The translations under genes were made by a program, and so were the position numbers. Shown one piece after another: positions 1 through 10,000 of a DNA stretch of 64,000 nt. Below the pieces are notes generated by a model. The model ran no database searches. It was not told the origin of the DNA and saw only the letters and a program-made list of their open reading frames with translations. The stretch covers positions 62,001 to 126,000 of the forward strand of contig FLMG01001166.1 in the NCBI GenBank assembly GCA_900088475.1, read 5' to 3'. Origin of the DNA: Hyphochytrium catenoides (taxonomy: Eukaryota; Protista; Hyphochytriomycota). The number at the start of each line of letters is the position of its first letter. The stretch's first letter is position 1.

Positions 1-33
1 ATTAACTGAGGTCATCAGCTCAGGTGGTGGCTA

Positions 34-3000
34 ATGAAGCGAAGCAAGATGAAGCTTCAGATGTGGCTTATGATGCTCTTCTGCTATTACCTGTCTGGAT
101 ATGACCGTGATATGAGGATGGTGCAAGCTCAGGTTGCCGTGGGAGGTATCTGTAGCTGCATTGGGCGTCAATCACTGAGGGGCCACCTCATAATCTATGG
201 TGATCCTGACACGTCAACCTACTGGAAAGCAGTCCAGACTGGTTTCCTAGAAGCATCCAAGCGACTCTGCATCCGTGCAGACATTCGGACGGTCCCTGCA
301 ACGGAGTTTTTCACTAAGTATCAATACTCTGCACGTGATGCACTAAATAGTCGACTGCAAGCATTCCTAAGTGAAGCAAGCCAGTATCCTCCCACTACCG
401 ACTTCATCGTCACGTCCGCCGTGAATGAATGGCACAGAAGGAGCCGTAGCTGCGCTCCGGAGTGCTGGCTACAAGGTCTTTACTATTGGAAGCTACACCC
501 CTCAGGGACATCTGCATGTGGGGCAGGATGACTATGACGCTGGCTTCCGCGCGGGAACACGTTGCGGCCAGGACCAGGCGCTGGATAATCTTTGCATCAT
601 CCATCAAGGGGCCAATCCGGTCTTTGTGGAACGATGTCGAGGCTTTCAAGATGGAGTCAAGAAAGCATGCACAAAGTGCAAAGCCCGGGTTGTGATGGTT
701 AACAATGATAATATGGAAGAAGCTATCATCACTATCCGCGAAGCTGCGACAGTGAACACGACAGGCTTCTTCGTCCTCTCTGACACAATGTCTCAACCAT
801 TGAAACGAGCTGTCCAGGGTCTGCCGACACCAAAGACTCCCTTCATCTTGGGGTCCTGTGACCTTTTGGAGAACAATCGCAAACTTCTCCGAGAGAAGCA
901 ACTAAGCTTTGTCGCCGACCAGCAGCCATATCTCAAGGTTACATAGCAACCATGACTGCAGTGCAATTCATGTGGACTGGGAACAAGCCCGTAAATCGAT
1001 ATATCAATACGGGCTCCTATCTTGTCAATGCGATTGTCAGGACGAAGAGATGCTAAAGCAAAGCGAAGTCCGCCTCCGCATCGTTCTCAGCGGGCGAGAT
1101 ACGAGTCAATTCTGGCAAGTAGTCAAGAGTGGCTTTCGTGAGGCTGCTGCAGATACTGGCCTTGAGTACAAAGACTGCAATAACCAAACGGTCGTCTGTA
1201 ATGCCACCGACGGACTGCAATACCGCGCACCTGCGGGAACTTTTGACGTTGGAATGGCGAACAGTTTCCTGGATGATCTGGTCGTGGAGAAAGCCAATGG
1301 TATCGTCCTCACTGTTGCTAATAGTGAAGCAATGGCAGACTCAATCTTAAACGCGGACAAGGCTGGGTAAAGATGTTGACCTTCAATTCGTGGCAGACGG
1401 CACGGGCAGACATTGGCGTGAATTTTGCCACTCATATTGGTCAGGACGAATGTGTGGCGGGTTTCATGATGGGAGAGCGCCTAAGAACATTGGGCTTTAG
1501 ATCCATCCTTTTTCTCAACTCACAAGTAGGCAATATTGGAACGGACCTTCGGTTGGGAGGGTTGAACGCAGCTTTCAATGGCAGTGGCATCAGCGTCCAT
1601 ATAGCCAAAGTAGCATCTGACAACATCCCAGCGTCGTACAAAGCAATGGACGATGTCTTTGCTCTCGGTACTTCTCCCCCAATTGACTGCATGATTGCCA
1701 TTGGTTCCTTTACCGCACACGCCGTGAAGTACGTAACCACCAATAGTACATCTGGTTCGGTTGCCTCGCAGTCCAAGGTCGTTAACTTCGATGTGAACGA
1801 GCAAATATTGGCGATGATACAAGCGGGCAACGTTGCGTTCTCCATCAACCAGCAACAGTATCTCCAGGGGTATTTGCCAATCGTTCTCATGCACCTCCTT
1901 CTGGTCTCTGGGCAGCAGTTGAGGGAGCCACTTATCCTCACGGGCCCCAGCATCGTTGATTTGAGCAACATTAACAATCACTGCATGGGCTACCTCTGTC
2001 CTTCTTCTGCGTCTCCTAACGCTATCGGTAGTGCTCCTGGCGGAGAACGAAACAATAGTTGCCCGTTTCCCTCTTGGGCGGGGGACGGGTTTTGCGACTC
2101 CGTCAACAACATCCCAGAATGTGGCTATGACGGTGGTGATTGCTGTGCCTCAACGTGCAAAAGTAGACGCTTTGCTTGTAACTCGGACTTCTTCAGCATA
2201 AACTTCAACAGTTATAAGTGCCTAGATCCGTCAGCAAAAGAGACGTGCAAGCCCGGACAAGAGTTTCAGAAGGGAATCTGCGTGGACTGCCCGTCGGGGT
2301 TCTTTGGCCCTGATGGACAGGTTTGCATTCCTTGTTTCTCCTTCTCGCAGCGATTGCGATGTGAGGGGAAGACCTATGTGTATGCCCGCAAAGGATATTG
2401 GTTGAATGAGACTCGCCTCAGTTCAGCGCTGAAGTCTATTGCTTGGGACGAACTGGGAACAAGCGAGCTTAATCGCTCCAAAGCTATCTCTTCTGCTGTA
2501 GATGCCTCAGTCTTCCTCTGTCCGCAAGGGTTTTGTCCTGGTAAACGTGACCCATAGAGTCGCTAGGCTTTGGAACGGTGAGTGGATGTTACTCCGGCTA
2601 CGATCCTGCCTCTCCTCTTTGCATGGGATGTGCTGAAGGGTATGAAAAAATTGGGACAGCTTGCCAACGCAGCGGTGCCAGTGAATGTGCTAATGTCAGC
2701 TTGAGAGTTCGCGCTGTGACCTTCCTCGGAGTGGGAATAGGCGTGATGCTCGCCACCCTTGTGGTCCTCTTGCGGGACACCACCTCCAGTAAAGTTCAGT
2801 CAGCCTCAATATTGATACTCATCTATTTCATTCAGGGTAAGACGTGCTTGATTGACCGCTATCCGCGCGCATCATCATGTGGGAGCCTTTTGGCCTGCTA
2901 GTGTCACGCTTCACTGATACCTACTGATGTTCACTTATCTTGTCCATGGAACAGCTCAAGTTGGGATTGGGCAAAACTCGCCCACCGGTAAAACTCCCGG

Positions 3001-4765
3001 GCTGGCCCTCGTAGAGGTCTTTAACTACAATTTGTTCCGTCCAGTGCGAGTTGGCGGCATAGTAAGTTCCCCTCCTCACCATGCGGCTGCGTCCAAGCTT
3101 CGAACTCTTATAGAACAGTAGTAAGTTCCTGGCTCTTTGCTTGATGGCTAACCGTGATGACATGTTCAGAATTGCGGCTACCTCGGCTACGGATCGGTGT
3201 ATGACATGTTTTTCTTTCAAGCTATGCTGGCAATCGTTGCGGTCATCGTCTACGTCTTAAGCTGCCTGGTCTTCTACTGGTTCGTTTTAGTCTCTGGGAT
3301 CCGCAGTTTCAAAAGTCTTGGCAAACTTCTGTTGGAAGCGAGCGCTAAGGGCTCAGGACCTGAAGGAGAAAAAGGGTCTTCTAGGTTTTGGAGGTGCGTA
3401 CCTAATGGTAGTTTATACTGTCTCTGATGATGAGCACGACGCCGACCTCAGCAATATCATCTACTCACCTGCTGAAATGTATTTGAACTACTAGGTTTCG
3501 GCTCCCTCGCATCTTGAAGTCCTCTGTGTCAGTCCAACCGGGAGGGCATTCTGCGCGAAAGTCACTTGATAAGCTTTATTGTCAGAGAAAGGTAAGTAGA
3601 GGAGGAAGAAAGAAGGGGAATCTCAAGTGTCAGAAGATTCCTAAGCCGGTCTCCGTGATACTTTCCCTAGATCAAGCAGACTACCCAGGCCGTCCTGGTG
3701 CACATCTTGGTGTTCCCTTTAGTTCGCTTGGCGCTACAGCTTCGGCGATGTCGTCAAGTGTCGGGTGCACTGGTTCTTCAGGCAGACACCAGTATATCAT
3801 GTTCCAGCGAAACCTATGAGCAGGGTGACACGATAGCCATTATACTGCTTTGTTTCTGTGGAGCCATAATCCTTCCATGGACCTTAGTGAACTTCCTATG
3901 GTTCTCGGTGTTCGCTGAGAAGTTCTCCGATATCAGTGTCACCAAGTTCCTCGGTTTTCGAGGTACGATTTATGGACAGCCTTAGATGTTAACAAGCGCC
4001 ATGTCTTCTCTTTCGATCGCACTGACGACTACCGCTGCCCCTTGCTCTATGTGCCATCCCTGTAGTGGACCTGATTAGGTTTCGTGGTGATTACATGGGA
4101 TTCTTCCGCTCCTTCAAAGACGAGTTTTCGCATTGGGGACTATGGAAAACCTGTGAAATGGTCATTCTTGCGATGATGTTAGAACTCCCTGACTCCACGA
4201 CAGTGAAGCTTTTTCTTGTCTGGACCTTATGGCTGTTTTCCCTCATCTTCCAGCTGAGGAATCGGCCATACAAATGTAAGAACTTATTGAAGAAAGAGGA
4301 ACTGTCTTACCTTCCCCCGGAGCGCTCTGATTCCCTTCTGACGATACCTTTGCCTACTCTATCCTCCAATTTCCAGTGAAGAGTGACAATATGCTAGCCG
4401 AGATTGCGCTGATGCTGCAGTTCTTTTGCTCTTCATATTATATCCTGCTTGAGCTGAAGTCGGACAATATCGATTGGGAGACGATGAGCACGGTCGTTGT
4501 GGTCATTGTCACCGTCCTCTTCTCAGCTCTGAACATTGACGATGACGAAGACACGGACGCATCCAGAAAGAGACAAGACAGATGGCGATGGCTTGCTCGC
4601 CTGAAGAAGCCGAGGTCAGGAATGGACTCAAGAAAAGCAACGGGAGAGGCCGTCAAGGTGGACAGGAAGCTCGTCGTCCCGCGGCGATGGAAGAATGCAC
4701 TCAGAACTGTTATTGCCCGAAAGCAGCAAAGCCGAGTACATAGCGCCTTCGAAGTCTCGTCCTAG
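34..4765 (+). CDS. Receptor-like multipass membrane protein: signal peptide, two type I sugar-binding PBP domains, LNR module, Cys-rich stalk and multi-TM C-terminus; 5' part frameshifted (possible pseudogene or sequence error)
   Basis: Two homologous PBP repeats: YWKAVQTGFLEA/FWQVVKSGFREA, HVGQDDYDAGF/HIGQDECVAGF, DQQPYL(QGY)/NQQQYLQGYLPI. LNR-type CPFPSWAGDGFCDSVNNIPECGYDGGDCC at 2060-2146. CxxCPxG repeats follow. Hydrophobic exons at about 2700-4530 are joined by GT-AG introns. Frame changes near 425, 934, 1028 and 1367. Confidence 0.75.
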
Positions 4766-7069
4766 AAAAGATGGAGCGCCAGCGATAGTGGCAAGGCAGC
4801 CCGTGCCTGCCTCATATGCCCTTATGTGTCAGCTCTAGTATGATGGTGGCTTAAGGGAGGATATGGTATAATAATGGAAACTGTGAAGAGGACGGAGTGG
4901 AAACTCAGCTTCGATCTTAGCCGAGGAGAGTTGTTAGCCATTATGAGCTTGAGGCAAACATAGGCCGACCATTCTCGACAATAAGGGGCCACGTTCGCTA
5001 GCTGAGTAAGGCACTAACAGCTGAGGAAATGCTAGTTTATTTCAGTGTGCACAAACAGCATAAGGTAAGAAAGCGCATCTATGGTTCAAACATGTGAGAC
5101 GCGCAATAGCGGATTAGAGCTGGATGGCGGTGGGACGTCTGATATCTCTCTCAGCTCATAAACTGTTAGTCGACCGCTGAAGAGCAAGTGGTGGTGGATC
5201 GATTCTTGACTCCAGACCAAGCTGAACAAGTTCTAACACACCTCCTTATGCTAGCACAGTCTGACTGTTGAACAAAGACTGACTGAATCGGACAGCACAC
5301 ATAGATCTTCTTTCATGGATCTTGGCTAATGACATACTCAAAGATGGCGGACGAGACTGAATAAGACCTCATTGTTCTCACGTAAGAGATTTACGTTCTT
5401 TCTTCGATTGCGGTGGAGGCTTGCTCGACTGGCCGTAGCACCGCCATGAGGCTTTCTGTTGAACGCGATCTCCCAAAGCTCGCTAGAGTGGCAGCCACTA
5501 CATTATTACTTACTTCTTCTCCTACTGCATCTACATCCGTTCAGATCCCCATCATATATTTCGACAACAGGTGTTGACGACGTGCAGCCGCTAAACCCCA
5601 GGACTCCTGTTAATACTTCATCAGGAAAGCCCGAAGGAAGAAGGAAGCAATGGCGTTTCGCGTCAGAACGCGTCAAGTAGCGAGACGAAAAAACTTGACT
5701 TATTATTTGACAACAAAAGACAAAAGGCGCTCTTCTTCGTCTACTTCTTACATCATCGCTGTGCCTCCCTCCACGTCTAGAGCGTTATGTCTCCCAGTAG
5801 TACTAGCCTATGGTGACGCAAGTGTAAAGGCAAGCGCTAGAGGAGGACGCAGCAACAAGCCCATCAAGTTAGAGCTAGTGAAAGTGAAGCAAATCTATCA
5901 AGTGGTGGTCGAGTGAGAGTCGGATGATGATGACTCTCGTCTGCAATGATAACTGGGTTAGTTGGTGGACAGCAGGAGGATGCTGAGCAATGTATATGCG
6001 CAAAACTTAGAATAAAGAGCTAGCTCTCCTCCCTATCAGCAGCAGACAGCCCAGGCCTTCTCCTTAGATCATCTTCATTGTTGTCAGGGCCCTCGTCTGA
6101 CTCCAAGCAAGAAAAGGTCGCCGCTGTCCGGCCGGCGCGGTGGCTGCCTCTTCTTCTTCTATGGCCTGGGAAGACGGAATGCGCTCCACTGGTGGCTGAT
6201 CTGTGCTGGTCATAACTCGCTCAAACAGATACGCCGGAGGATGGTTACGCCACCACGCACCAGAAGACGAACTGGCAAACCGGCGGCGGAGGACATCAGG
6301 ACATCCTAGCCATCCGAGCGAAGCATGCATCTTCAGTTCTTCAGTACTACTCTGGTTATACTCACACGGTGTGGAATGCATGATAGATACGATTGCATGA
6401 TGATGGTAGTCTATGCAAGAAGTCTTCTGTCTCCTCTTTGAATTTGGATCAAAAATCTGGATCATGAATAATAATCACCATTCTTCAGAGGTGGGATGGG
6501 GAGGTGGAGGGCAAGGAGGATCTGAGGACTAGGGAGGCGCTGTAGTAACTGAGCCCTTCATTAATATAGTCTTTATATCCGGTTATCAATACGTAGTTTT
6601 GCAGTCCATGATTCTTGCCTTCTGCAAAGGGCAAAAAGTGGAAAAGTGACGTTTTGAATGTCAGAGGCATCATGATGGCACAGAGGCCAGCGTTGATGGG
6701 TCCAGATACTCAGCTATCAGTCCAAGCGTCAAGCGTGCTCGGAGATCGTCAATGATCATCGGGATGACAGCAGGAGACAGACATCTAGACAGGCCATCTC
6801 TGTGACACTAGAGCCTCGGGAAGCGGGGGAGTGACTGCCTAGTAGAAGCCCGTGAGACAGTAGAGCCTTGAGGAAATCCGAGAACCTTCGCATGTGACAA
6901 TGCTGAAGGAGTAAGGTAAAGTTCGCAAGAATGCAAAGCTCAAGGAAGGCTTTCCTCAATAGTCCCAGAAGATACGCCTGGGTCGAAGCAACCTGGGAGA
7001 AGAGTGGTCACTAGTGTAACAAGTGGTTGGCTTGGCGCGGACAGCGTTGAGAGTGAGACAGACGTGACG

Positions 7070-10000
7070 ATGGCAACGTCCAGCAGGCCTGGTGATTCCG
7101 GTGTCAAAGATGAGATCCGTCAACTGGAGCTGACTCTCGAAAAAACGGAAAGCAGAGTGCGCTTTTTAGAGGATGAAAACGCGTCTCTGAGGGAGGTAAG
7201 CTATAGTCATCTGCCTTCGGCTGGTCTTTGTCTCAACCTTGGTACTTACAGCACTCTTGCATCCTGATCTTGATTTGAACAGCAACTGCACTCGCATGAT
7301 CGAGATGGGGGCCGTCCTCTGGCCACCGAGTACAGATCGAAATATGACAAGCAAGTTGAACGAGAGAAAGCTCTCAAGGAAGAGCTTCAGCGGGCAGAAA
7401 AGAGGGCTCGACAGGTCCACTCTCGCTGACCCGACCCTTACTGAAGCTCATCGTCTGCAATTGTAGCCCTTCTGATCTCTAGCTCCTACGTTTACGTTGT
7501 TCTATCGCTATCTGTCTCACTTCCTTATTTCTGTCGCCATTCACCTATAAGGTCACATGTCTCTGTCATTCATGCCATGACTGACTCTGCCTTCTCACCA
7601 TGCCTCGCATTGTGACTTCTTTAAACCACCTTTTTGAAGGCGGAGAAGGAGGTGGAGCGGCACCTTTCGGATATACAGAAGCTTGAGGAAGAGAACCAGT
7701 CCCTTCAGACCGAGGTGGAAGAGAAGAGCCGCCTTCTGTTGCGCGAGAGACAAATCCGTGACTCTGCTGCAAGCTCTAAGGGCAAAGATGGAGAGAAAGC
7801 GAATCAGAGGGCTGAGCTGATTATTGCCTTGGCCGAGAACGAGGATCTGAGAAACCAGCTTGCTGCTCTGCATAGTGAGATGGAGAGCCTCGTAGAAGCG
7901 GCTCAGCAGCTTGATGCGGACCTCAGAGCGAAGCAGACAGAAGTTGAGGAGATGAAGGAAAGAGGTCATAAGTACATGCAGGAAATTGCCGAACTGAAGG
8001 CACACCAGGAAGAAAGCGACAGGGAAGAGAAAAGGCTTCATGATGAGATACTTAAACTTGACGAGAGGGAACACAACCATCGAGAAGCTTTAGAGAGATT
8101 GACGAGAGATCATGGCCAGCGGGTTGCACTCCTGGAGGATACGATTACACAGCAGAAGAGCAGCATCTCCCTCCTAGAGAAAGAGGTAGAGCATCTGAGA
8201 TCCTCGTCAGACGTTAGTTCGCTGCTGAAGAAAATTGAGGAGCTCGAAACAGCAAGAACATTGGACAAGAAGGCTCTTATGTCAACTCAAACTGAGCTGG
8301 ACAAAACCTTAGCGGATCTAGAGACGATGTGGGAGCTCGGTGAACAATTTGAGCAAAGACTTCAAGAGGCCGTGGAAAAAGCAGCTGGAGAGGAAAAGAA
8401 GAAGAACGAAGAGCTAGTGAAAAAAGTGAGTTCCTTATTATCCTGTTCGTCAGCTCTTAGGCTTCGCTGGAGAGATTATCTGGCGCTTGCGACGCTTAAC
8501 AAAATCTGTCTTAGCATTCCATGCCATGAGTCTCTGCTTTGCTACTCAAACAAGTGCCGTACGTCTTATGGTCTTTACTAATATTCTCCCGTCTGTTTGT
8601 AAGCTGGAGCAAGCGCAGGAAAAGTTAAATGAGCAGAGAAAGTTAATCTCAGAATACGAGTTAAAGCTTGCAATGGAGGAAAAGGAAAGGAGGGAAGCAG
8701 AAGCATGGAATGCTGCTTATGAAAAGAAAGCTGGCTTAGAGGATGTGGTTCGTTATCAGAAAAAGCTAAAGGCAGATATAAGGTTAGCTGTTTCCAAGCA
8801 ATTCCCCCTCTCTACGTGCCCTTTGACCTCATAAATGGGCAGCAAGTGCGTGCGCAATTACATTATTTTTCTCTACCGCTGTGTATCATGTGAGGACCGA
8901 GTAAGATCATTTCTCTTTCTCAAGGCTGCCTGCGTTTCGTCACGGTGTTTTTTAGGCGAAGAGACGAGGACATTCGTAAGCTCAACATGAAGCTTGGAGA
9001 GCAGATGGACGCGAGTAGCTTACTTTATAGTACCTGCCAGAGGCTGAAGCAGGAGCTAGGCCGATCTCCTGACTTCCAGTACGATGACGTGGAGGTAGAG
9101 AGTATATGCTATCTTTCTCTTGGTTCCTCTGCTGTCAGGATCTAGTCCTTCATCCTCTCATCTGTCCTCCCTCCCACCCCTCGTTCTCTTCTATCCCCTT
9201 GTTGCCTTCTTCCCTGCTCTTCTTTACTTTAGGATGAATCTATACTCTATCTCGAGCCTTGACTGAGTGCCCCTTGACTAATTGTCTCATTGCCGCATGT
9301 CCCTCTCACTTCCTCATGTCCCTCTTCCAGCTAAAGACGGAGTATAATGGAGAGCTTGGAGCTGCGCAAGCTTTGAACCAGCAATTGTTGGCACAGATCG
9401 ACGACTTGGAGGAAGAGAGGCTAAGGCTTCTAAAGGTGCGGACGTCAGACTCTCACTTCCGTCGGACTCTGAATATGTGCATGCCGTAGCCGGAGATGCG
9501 TCATCTTTACACTTTCTACATATTCTCGCTTCCGTGACAATGTGGGCCGCAAGCCCTTCTTAGTTCTTCGGCTGAGTGACCCCACTTCTATTAGGCCCTC
9601 CGGTTGAACGCCAAGCATCTAGGAGCAACCGGAATGAAAGATTTCGGCCTTCTGCCTGAACAGATGGTTCTGGTCAACGAGTTCATAGACAACCTTAAGG
9701 AAGGCCGGGCAGATCTGAGACCCGCTCCTTTGTCACTCTATAGTAGAGAGAAAGAGCAAGAGCTACAAGAGCTCAGGACCCAGCTTGCAGTTGCGAATAG
9801 GAGAATAGAAGATTTGGAGGCCCTCAGGGACGAGGATGAAGGTGAGGTTAAAGTGCTGGCATTGCCGATTGTTAGGGTTGCACCCTACTCTCTCAGTCCA
9901 GTCTCCTCGTCTCACACGTCACCAATCCTAAGTCCTTATACCCGGCACTCTGTTCCTGTGTTATATGGTGCTGCTTATGATCACTCTGTTCCCCCGTCGC

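Follow-up and report, generated by a model that had tools for sequence, protein, structure and literature searches.

The window analysed in this study is a 64,000-nucleotide (nt) stretch of the Hyphochytrium catenoides genome (contig FLMG01001166.1). Positions 34-4765 of its plus strand hold a gene of seven exons that is predicted to encode a membrane protein with two bacterial-type solute-binding domains (PBP1 and PBP2), a Notch-type LNR module, a Cys-rich stalk and a core of about nine transmembrane (TM) helices. Three-frame translation of positions 1-5000 placed the gene start at the ATG at 34, where a hydrophobic N-terminus is followed by the binding domains. A sequence-only reading of the DNA had described 34-4765 as one chimeric receptor. 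All of the domains that it listed were found close to where it had placed them, but the stretch is not one open frame, as it is interrupted by five frame breaks and six introns. Separate exon or frame pieces were used as queries in the searches. The exon-intron layout is as follows.

34-2836 (+): exon 1, from three-frame translation and DNA; start codon, signal-peptide-like start, PBP1, PBP2, LNR, Cys-rich stalk, TM1 and start of TM2
2837-2954 (+): intron 1, 118 nt, GTAAGA..CAG
2955-3061 (+): exon 2, by colinearity with the paralogue C90
3062-3169 (+): intron 2, 108 nt, GTAAGT..CAG
3170-3393 (+): exon 3, by colinearity with C90
3394-3494 (+): intron 3, 101 nt, GTGCGT..TAG; the least certain boundary
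3495-3591 (+): exon 4, predicted cytoplasmic loop; SLDKLYCQRK/IKQTT aligns gap-free with SFQLRRWRQK/TWQGL of C90
3592-3670 (+): intron 4, 79 nt, GTAAGT..TAG
3671-3962 (+): exon 5, by colinearity with C90
3963-4065 (+): intron 5, 103 nt, GTACGA..TAG
4066-4275 (+): exon 6, by colinearity with C90
4276-4376 (+): intron 6, 101 nt, GTAAGA..CAG
4377-4765 (+): exon 7; TM8, TM9, an acidic patch, a Lys/Arg-rich tail predicted to be cytoplasmic (4538-4762) and a TAG stop at 4763-4765

All six introns are canonical GT-AG introns of 79-118 nt with GTAAG-type donors and YAG acceptors, and all lie in the membrane half of the gene. Exon 1 ends at the donor G/GTAAGA at 2837. The boundary of intron 3 was chosen because it preserves both the frame and the alignment with C90. 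Exons 2-7 are each open and colinear with this paralogue.

Upstream of the membrane core, the following parts were recognised in exon 1.

151-1040 (+): PBP1, Peripla_BP_4 domain (CUT2-type); Pfam PF13407 on 425-934 (E 7e-8), structure 4RU1 at E 0.01; aligns with PBP1 of the paralogue C2397 (residues 63-358)
1053-1965 (+): PBP2, Peripla_BP_4 domain; PF13407 on 1047-1367 (E 5e-6) and 1367-2554 (E 2e-14), 4RU1 at E 2.4e-15
2060-2143 (+): LNR module (Notch-type, Ca-binding), CPFPSWAGDGFCDSVNNIPECGYDGGDCC; Pfam PF00066 at 22-23 bits (cut-off 21.2)
2144-2700 (+): Cys-rich stalk with CxxC pairs (CVDCPSGFFGPDGQVCIPC; FGTVSGC...LCMGCAEGY), read from the translation and conserved in C90 and C2397

The PBP2 piece (1367-2554) scored 54.3 bits with PF13407, above the curated cut-off of 35.1. 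The PBP1 pieces scored 32.7 and 26.7 bits and fell under this cut-off because the frameshifts cut them; PBP1 is also the more divergent of the two domains. As seen in the translation and by tblastn, the signature motifs of the CUT2 family were retained in both PBP1 (HVGQDDYDAG, QQPYL/QGY) and PBP2 (HIGQDECVAG, QQQYLQGY). The two repeats with GQD..AG and QQ.YLQGY motifs noticed from the letters alone were thus recovered by profile as well as by eye, with PF13407 matches obtained in the window and in its paralogues. The ANF_receptor flytrap (PF01094) was not found by Pfam in the window or in four paralogues, where PF13407 was the only flytrap family returned apart from weak PF00532 matches. Pfam, structure and database matches agree that the domains are bacterial-type CUT2 sugar-binding domains and not the ANF/LIVBP flytrap of class C G-protein-coupled receptors (GPCRs), a distinction drawn by the sequence-only reading.

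The ligands that CUT2 binding proteins enclose are free sugars or polyols of small size. The database relatives of the domains in the window gene were binding proteins of bacterial sugar ABC transporters from Actinobacteria and Chloroflexi, at 30-35% identity. The nearest solved structure was 4RU1, the CUT2 binding protein of Acidothermus (ACEI_1806), which was matched at E 7e-21 by PBP2 of C2397 and which has been described as a component of a verified myo-inositol transporter (PMC10747050). A role as solute sensors is plausible for the predicted receptor family, and we infer from the family assignment that the solute sensed may be a sugar.

Bacterial tandem binding proteins with two Peripla_BP_4 domains, 640-700 amino acids (aa) long, were present among the database proteins. 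In the tree they formed a clade of their own with nearly identical halves, while the eukaryotic PBP1s clustered together and so did the PBP2s, on long branches and with an unresolved backbone. Because of this grouping of PBP1s and PBP2s, the eukaryotic tandem appears to have arisen independently and before the family expanded; inheritance of the pair from the bacterial tandems was not supported by the tree. The tandem database proteins P0061-P0074 ranged from 628 to 702 aa, and the sole source named among them was a Chloroflexi metagenome-assembled genome. In several of them the N and C halves were mutually closest in the tree (P0064, P0067, P0071, P0073 and P0074 are examples), which suggests repeated recent internal duplication or gene conversion.

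The LNR module was matched by PF00066 at 22-27 bits in the window, C90 and C1473, and its translation contains six Cys as well as the DGxCD and DGGDC calcium-binding motifs. The best database matches of this piece were LNR proteins of brown algae. For the stalk, the lone Pfam hint was a sub-threshold TNFR-like match in C90. The LNR module and CxxC repeats that had been placed downstream of the PBPs therefore both stand, the former above its Pfam cut-off and the latter in the translation. Among the candidates listed, which were capped at 8000, and within the length limits of the searches, no database protein combined PF13407 with PF00066.

The membrane core was mapped with a hydropathy scan and by exon-by-exon colinearity with the single frame of C90.

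2716-4537 (+): membrane core of about nine helices, exons 1-7
2716-2772 (+): TM1, strong in hydropathy
about 2797-2975 (+): TM2, weak and spliced; below the hydropathy threshold, predicted
3233-3289 (+): TM3, hydropathy
3686-3742 (+): TM4, hydropathy
3833-3889 (+): TM5, hydropathy
about 4134-4187 (+): TM6, below the hydropathy threshold, predicted
4200-4256 (+): TM7, hydropathy
4394-4450 (+): TM8, hydropathy
4481-4537 (+): TM9, hydropathy

The scan gave seven strong helices and two weaker, amphipathic ones. We infer that a nine-helix topology with the N-terminus outside and the C-terminus inside fits best: the ectodomain has to lie outside, the Lys/Arg-rich loops and tail would then be on the inner face, and one loop that contains two Cys and an NxS site would fall outside. 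The several TM helices and basic tail of the sequence-only reading were confirmed, the hydrophobic helices spanning 2716-4537 and the Lys/Arg-rich tail running to the stop codon.

Searches with this part of the protein gave little. No Pfam family was matched by the membrane half of C90 or by the window exons even at E 10, and the core had no sequence relative in PDB. A phmmer search of 1.84 billion representative proteins with the membrane half of C90 returned one spurious repeat protein and no true relative; a word search of a 5.8-billion-cluster set with the whole 891-aa C90 frame gave no match, nor did two metagenome scans of the Joint Genome Institute with the membrane core. In protein-language-model space the neighbours of the core were Cys-rich (Ephrin_rec_like) multi-pass proteins with scores of 0.92-0.94, which we treat as a lead only; in the clusters of these neighbours, 12-15% of members carried the TRP family PF06011. 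Neither C90 nor the window exons matched PF06011 itself, even at E 10, and a scan of the whole genome gave no match to it at the family loci. With a profile built from the last four helices (profile A2), the gene C4403 of the same genome was found at E 2.6e-4 (hhalign 74%, E 2.7e-5), and the segment so found matches PF06011 at 20.7 bits, below the threshold. The core showed no similarity to C3727, a bona fide PF06011 gene of the same genome. The link of the core to TRP/Flc-type (PF06011) proteins, the sole one reaching beyond the family, is thus weak and indirect. The genome also encodes a large Cys-rich surface protein with a faint PF06011 match (E 0.04); its open frame of 2215 codons, on contig C2217, contains an N-terminal region that resembles IPT, Cys repeats of ephrin-receptor-like type and a multi-pass membrane region.

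The fusion of binding and membrane parts is real. In C90, a stop-free frame of 891 codons holds the second half of PBP2, the LNR module, the stalk, all helices and the basic tail, so the fusion exists at the DNA level. This uninterrupted frame also answers at that level the possibility, raised by the sequence-only reading, that the PBP and TM halves belong to separate transcripts. At least five family loci were found in the 61-Mb genome (4759 contigs): C603 (the window gene), C90, C2397, C1473 and C778. In C2397, C1473 and C778, a signal peptide, PBP1, PBP2 and LNR lie in open frames that are 839-908 codons long. The search for intact paralogues that had been suggested was therefore successful, with these three open over PBP1-PBP2-LNR and C90 open from the PBP2 half to the tail. 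Peripla_BP_4 matches in the paralogues reached 81-143 bits in two stretches (142.9 bits in C2397; 86 bits, together with an LNR module, in C1473). Profile A2 also placed the core at C778 and C3400, and weakly at C4403. To judge from the searches made, the family is restricted to H. catenoides, and searches of the literature turned up no eukaryotic receptor with Peripla_BP_4 domains.

In C1473, on the minus strand, PBP1-PBP2-LNR lies in a frame of 908 codons. No nine-helix core was detected downstream of it, where the only open reading frame, of 185 aa, has one hydrophobic helix; C1473 may be a single-helix variant or may have a very divergent membrane part. Long CT/GA microsatellites, seen in translation as SLSLSL or ERERER, abound in the introns and intergenic DNA of the paralogues, and in contig C3400 stretches of N break the sequence where such repeats occur. 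A divergent gene on the minus strand (C603:57443-59435), which lies about 2.6 kb upstream of the window gene, begins with several hydrophobic helices and matches RGS (PF00615) below the threshold (E 0.0015, 19 bits).

Exon 1 as assembled contains five frame breaks, and three-frame translation located all of them within this exon. Three public DNA runs of the same organism (X1, X2 and X3) contain the locus, and their Logan contigs were compared with the window at each break.

422-427 (+): frame break 1, frame 1 to 2; a gaat-gaat 4-nt tandem repeat, with the 4 nt absent from X1 and X3 contigs and present in X2
932-934 (+): frame break 2, from frame 2 into frame 1; QQPYL/QGY is one base short, with an extra T after 932 in X1 and X2 and not in X3
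1027-1053 (+): frame break 3, from frame 1 into frame 3; the end of PBP1 is one base short, as given by the tblastn frames
1365-1368 (+): frame break 4, from frame 3 into frame 2; the DNA reads ggg-ta but would have to read gggg-ta, and frame 3 meets a TAA stop
2550-2556 (+): frame break 5, from frame 2 into frame 1; frame 2 meets a TAG stop

The proteins of two paralogues aligned colinearly by tblastn through all five breaks, which indicates that the breaks lie in coding sequence and not in introns. Frame-restoring mini-introns (GT..AG) of 26 nt at 2541-2566 and of 50 nt at 1001-1050 were considered as a cause and rejected. Both are far shorter than the real introns; the 50-nt candidate would remove the conserved I.TGP end of PBP1, and at 2553, within the 26-nt candidate, the other haplotype reads straight through. 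With five frameshifts, the gene copy assembled in the window cannot make the protein.

A different form was found at several of the breaks. At break 5, half of the X1 depth (226.6/446.3) has an additional A after 2553 together with the changes 2551 C>T and 2555 T>A, and by hand translation this form reads through (...CPGKRDPKESLGFGTVSGC...) and matches the paralogues. Each of the insertions or deletions (indels) at 422, 932 and 2553 restores the frame, also by hand translation. At break 3, contig 24-1093 of X2 has one unplaced extra base, as deduced from lengths, and second-haplotype single-nucleotide polymorphisms (SNPs) at 1017 and 1061; at break 4, contig 769-1511 of X3 likewise has one unplaced extra base. 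These two extra bases may be repairs of breaks 3 and 4.

The alternative forms belong to a second haplotype, which is about equally deep in X1 and departs from the assembled one at about 2-3% of positions. It also differs by many small indels in the introns and the 3' flank (2907-2912, 4289, 4765-4859), and it lacks at least three of the five breaks. Since its flanks are those of the same locus, the second form is allelic. A second copy elsewhere in the genome was considered and rejected, as the loose ends at 4 and 4988 are simply where the compared stretch stops. The coding SNPs listed comprise 23 synonymous and 14 non-synonymous changes over 941 and 3136 sites, respectively. The resulting ratio of non-synonymous to synonymous polymorphism (pN/pS) of about 0.18 indicates that purifying selection acted during most of the period after the two haplotypes split. 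The assembled haplotype is most likely an allele that was inactivated recently, in a gene functional now or until very recently, and the odds that a live allele is still present in the strain seem about even.

If the frameshifts were sequencing or assembly errors, for instance homopolymer miscalls in 2011-era reads, the gene would be intact on both chromosomes. Four of the five breaks are indeed single-base and mostly stand beside short runs (ct/ctt, ggg/gggg, ccca/cccaa), and X1, the deepest run, has only the frame-restoring form at 422 and 932. However, the break at 422 is a 4-nt tandem duplication with no homopolymer and is present in an X2 contig at depth 30, the two forms at 2553 are equally deep in X1 and come with linked SNPs, and at about 1040 as well as at 1367 an X1 contig agrees with the assembly. 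We consider errors a very unlikely explanation. The window gene could also be dead on both chromosomes, a decaying duplicate whose membrane exons have merely not yet been struck. This is unlikely but deserves to be taken seriously. The constraint expressed in the pN/pS value, the six introns with canonical sites, the open membrane exons and the exact frame-restoring indels of the other haplotype at three breaks all speak against it, whereas five frame breaks within 2.8 kb of exon 1 are what such a gene might show. Several further points weigh against a recently inactivated allele of a working receptor gene, and some of them would suit a dead duplicate. The break at 1367 is unchanged in the X1 and X2 contigs that cross it, which are all the contigs with their indels accounted for. 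Contig 2521-2821 of X2 has a net gain of two bases, which would not restore the frame and speaks against a fully intact second allele. The Logan contigs are mosaics of haplotypes with phase unassigned, and the five breaks are perhaps on different chromosomes. Among the public read runs searched no RNA run contains the locus, so that its expression and splicing are predicted. As to the protein, the core is without a relative of known function (Pfam, PDB, phmmer, word search), a single-sequence AlphaFold model of the membrane half was too poor to be used (predicted local distance difference test score, pLDDT, 46.5), and the putative ligand binding rests on family motifs.

A different role for the flytraps has also to be considered. 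They might serve adhesion or recognise glycans upon contact with prey, substrate or mates, much like the lectin-type heads of the apicomplexan CRMPs (cysteine repeat modular proteins), or might tether a nutrient-capture module beside a transporter-like core. CUT2 proteins close around small free solutes and not around polymer surfaces, and PBP2 retains the family signature motifs. Yet PBP1 is far more divergent than PBP2, and the nearest language-model neighbours of the core are the Cys-rich multi-pass proteins described above, some of them with PF06011. In addition, the CRMPs, which have carbohydrate-binding heads, an EGF-receptor-type Cys-rich region and nine helices, are proposed to act as contact sensors (PMC9670195). 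We are doubtful of this role. With moderate confidence, we favour the explanation that the window holds a seven-exon gene of a small, organism-specific family with at least five loci, that the family encodes membrane proteins with sugar/polyol flytraps, and that a recently inactivated allele was assembled.

The predicted order of parts in such a protein is a signal peptide, two CUT2/Peripla_BP_4 domains, the LNR module, the Cys-rich stalk, the core of about nine helices and a basic cytoplasmic tail. A small neutral solute, either a monosaccharide or a polyol such as inositol, would close one or both flytraps, and the movement would be transmitted via the rigid LNR module and Cys-rich stalk to the core. 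The core might then open as a channel or transporter-like pore, as in a TRP/Flc-like reading, or might signal via its cytoplasmic loops and the basic tail.

The layout resembles that of class C GPCRs (mGluR, CaSR and the T1R sweet/umami receptors), in which an extracellular Venus flytrap, a rigid Cys-rich linker and a multi-pass domain follow one another. The parts are different. Class C GPCRs have an ANF_receptor/LIVBP flytrap and seven helices; the family described here has two Peripla_BP_4 (CUT2) domains in tandem per chain, an inserted LNR module and about nine helices, and neither NCD3G nor 7tm_3 (PF00003) was found in it by Pfam, to E 10 in the membrane half. Since every defining part differs, the predicted receptor family is not a class C GPCR, and the analogous logic proposed by the sequence-only reading holds, with unrelated parts. 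Ionotropic glutamate receptors likewise carry two different PBP-fold domains in tandem above a membrane domain, but these are of other PBP classes and a P-loop tetramer forms the pore; homology was detected for none of the parts. With bacterial CUT2 proteins such as 4RU1 the binding domains share the family profile, the motifs (HxGQDE..AG, RC.G, FD, QQ.Y.GY) and the identity given above, but here they are fused, twice, to a eukaryotic stalk and membrane core and have no ABC transporter partner.

The CRMPs of apicomplexans and ciliates have a variable head, an EGF-receptor-like Cys-rich region, nine predicted helices and a cytoplasmic C-terminus, and have been proposed as contact or signal sensors (PMC9670195). 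Their architecture is alike, as compared by description and with our helices counted by hydropathy, but their heads are MAR and Kringle domains in place of PBP and LNR. The TRP/Flc-type proteins with Cys-rich ectodomains are the nearest language-model neighbours of the core, but their PF06011 profile was not matched. It is conceivable, though in our view improbable, that the family represents a class of eukaryotic receptor or ligand-gated pore that was invented independently, in which transferred and host-duplicated CUT2 flytraps drive a core distantly related to those of CRMP and TRP/Flc-like proteins. If true, it would provide the first simple, guessable ligand for the CRMP/TRP/Flc-like class of membrane cores.

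At the window locus, a heterozygous strain would be losing one family member or carrying it as a null allele. For this reason the intact paralogues C90 and C2397 are better suited to experiments. The family appears to be a PBP-coupled membrane receptor assembled from new parts, in a layout that we found described nowhere else. Joining a PBP fold to a membrane domain, as in class C GPCRs, glutamate receptor channels and natriuretic peptide receptors, is a standard reuse of bacterial parts in eukaryotic signalling. The family in H. catenoides would be a further, independent case, with another class of binding protein (CUT2, for sugars or polyols) and an uncharacterised nine-helix core, and its guessable ligand class and soluble ectodomain would offer a practical route to the function of that core.

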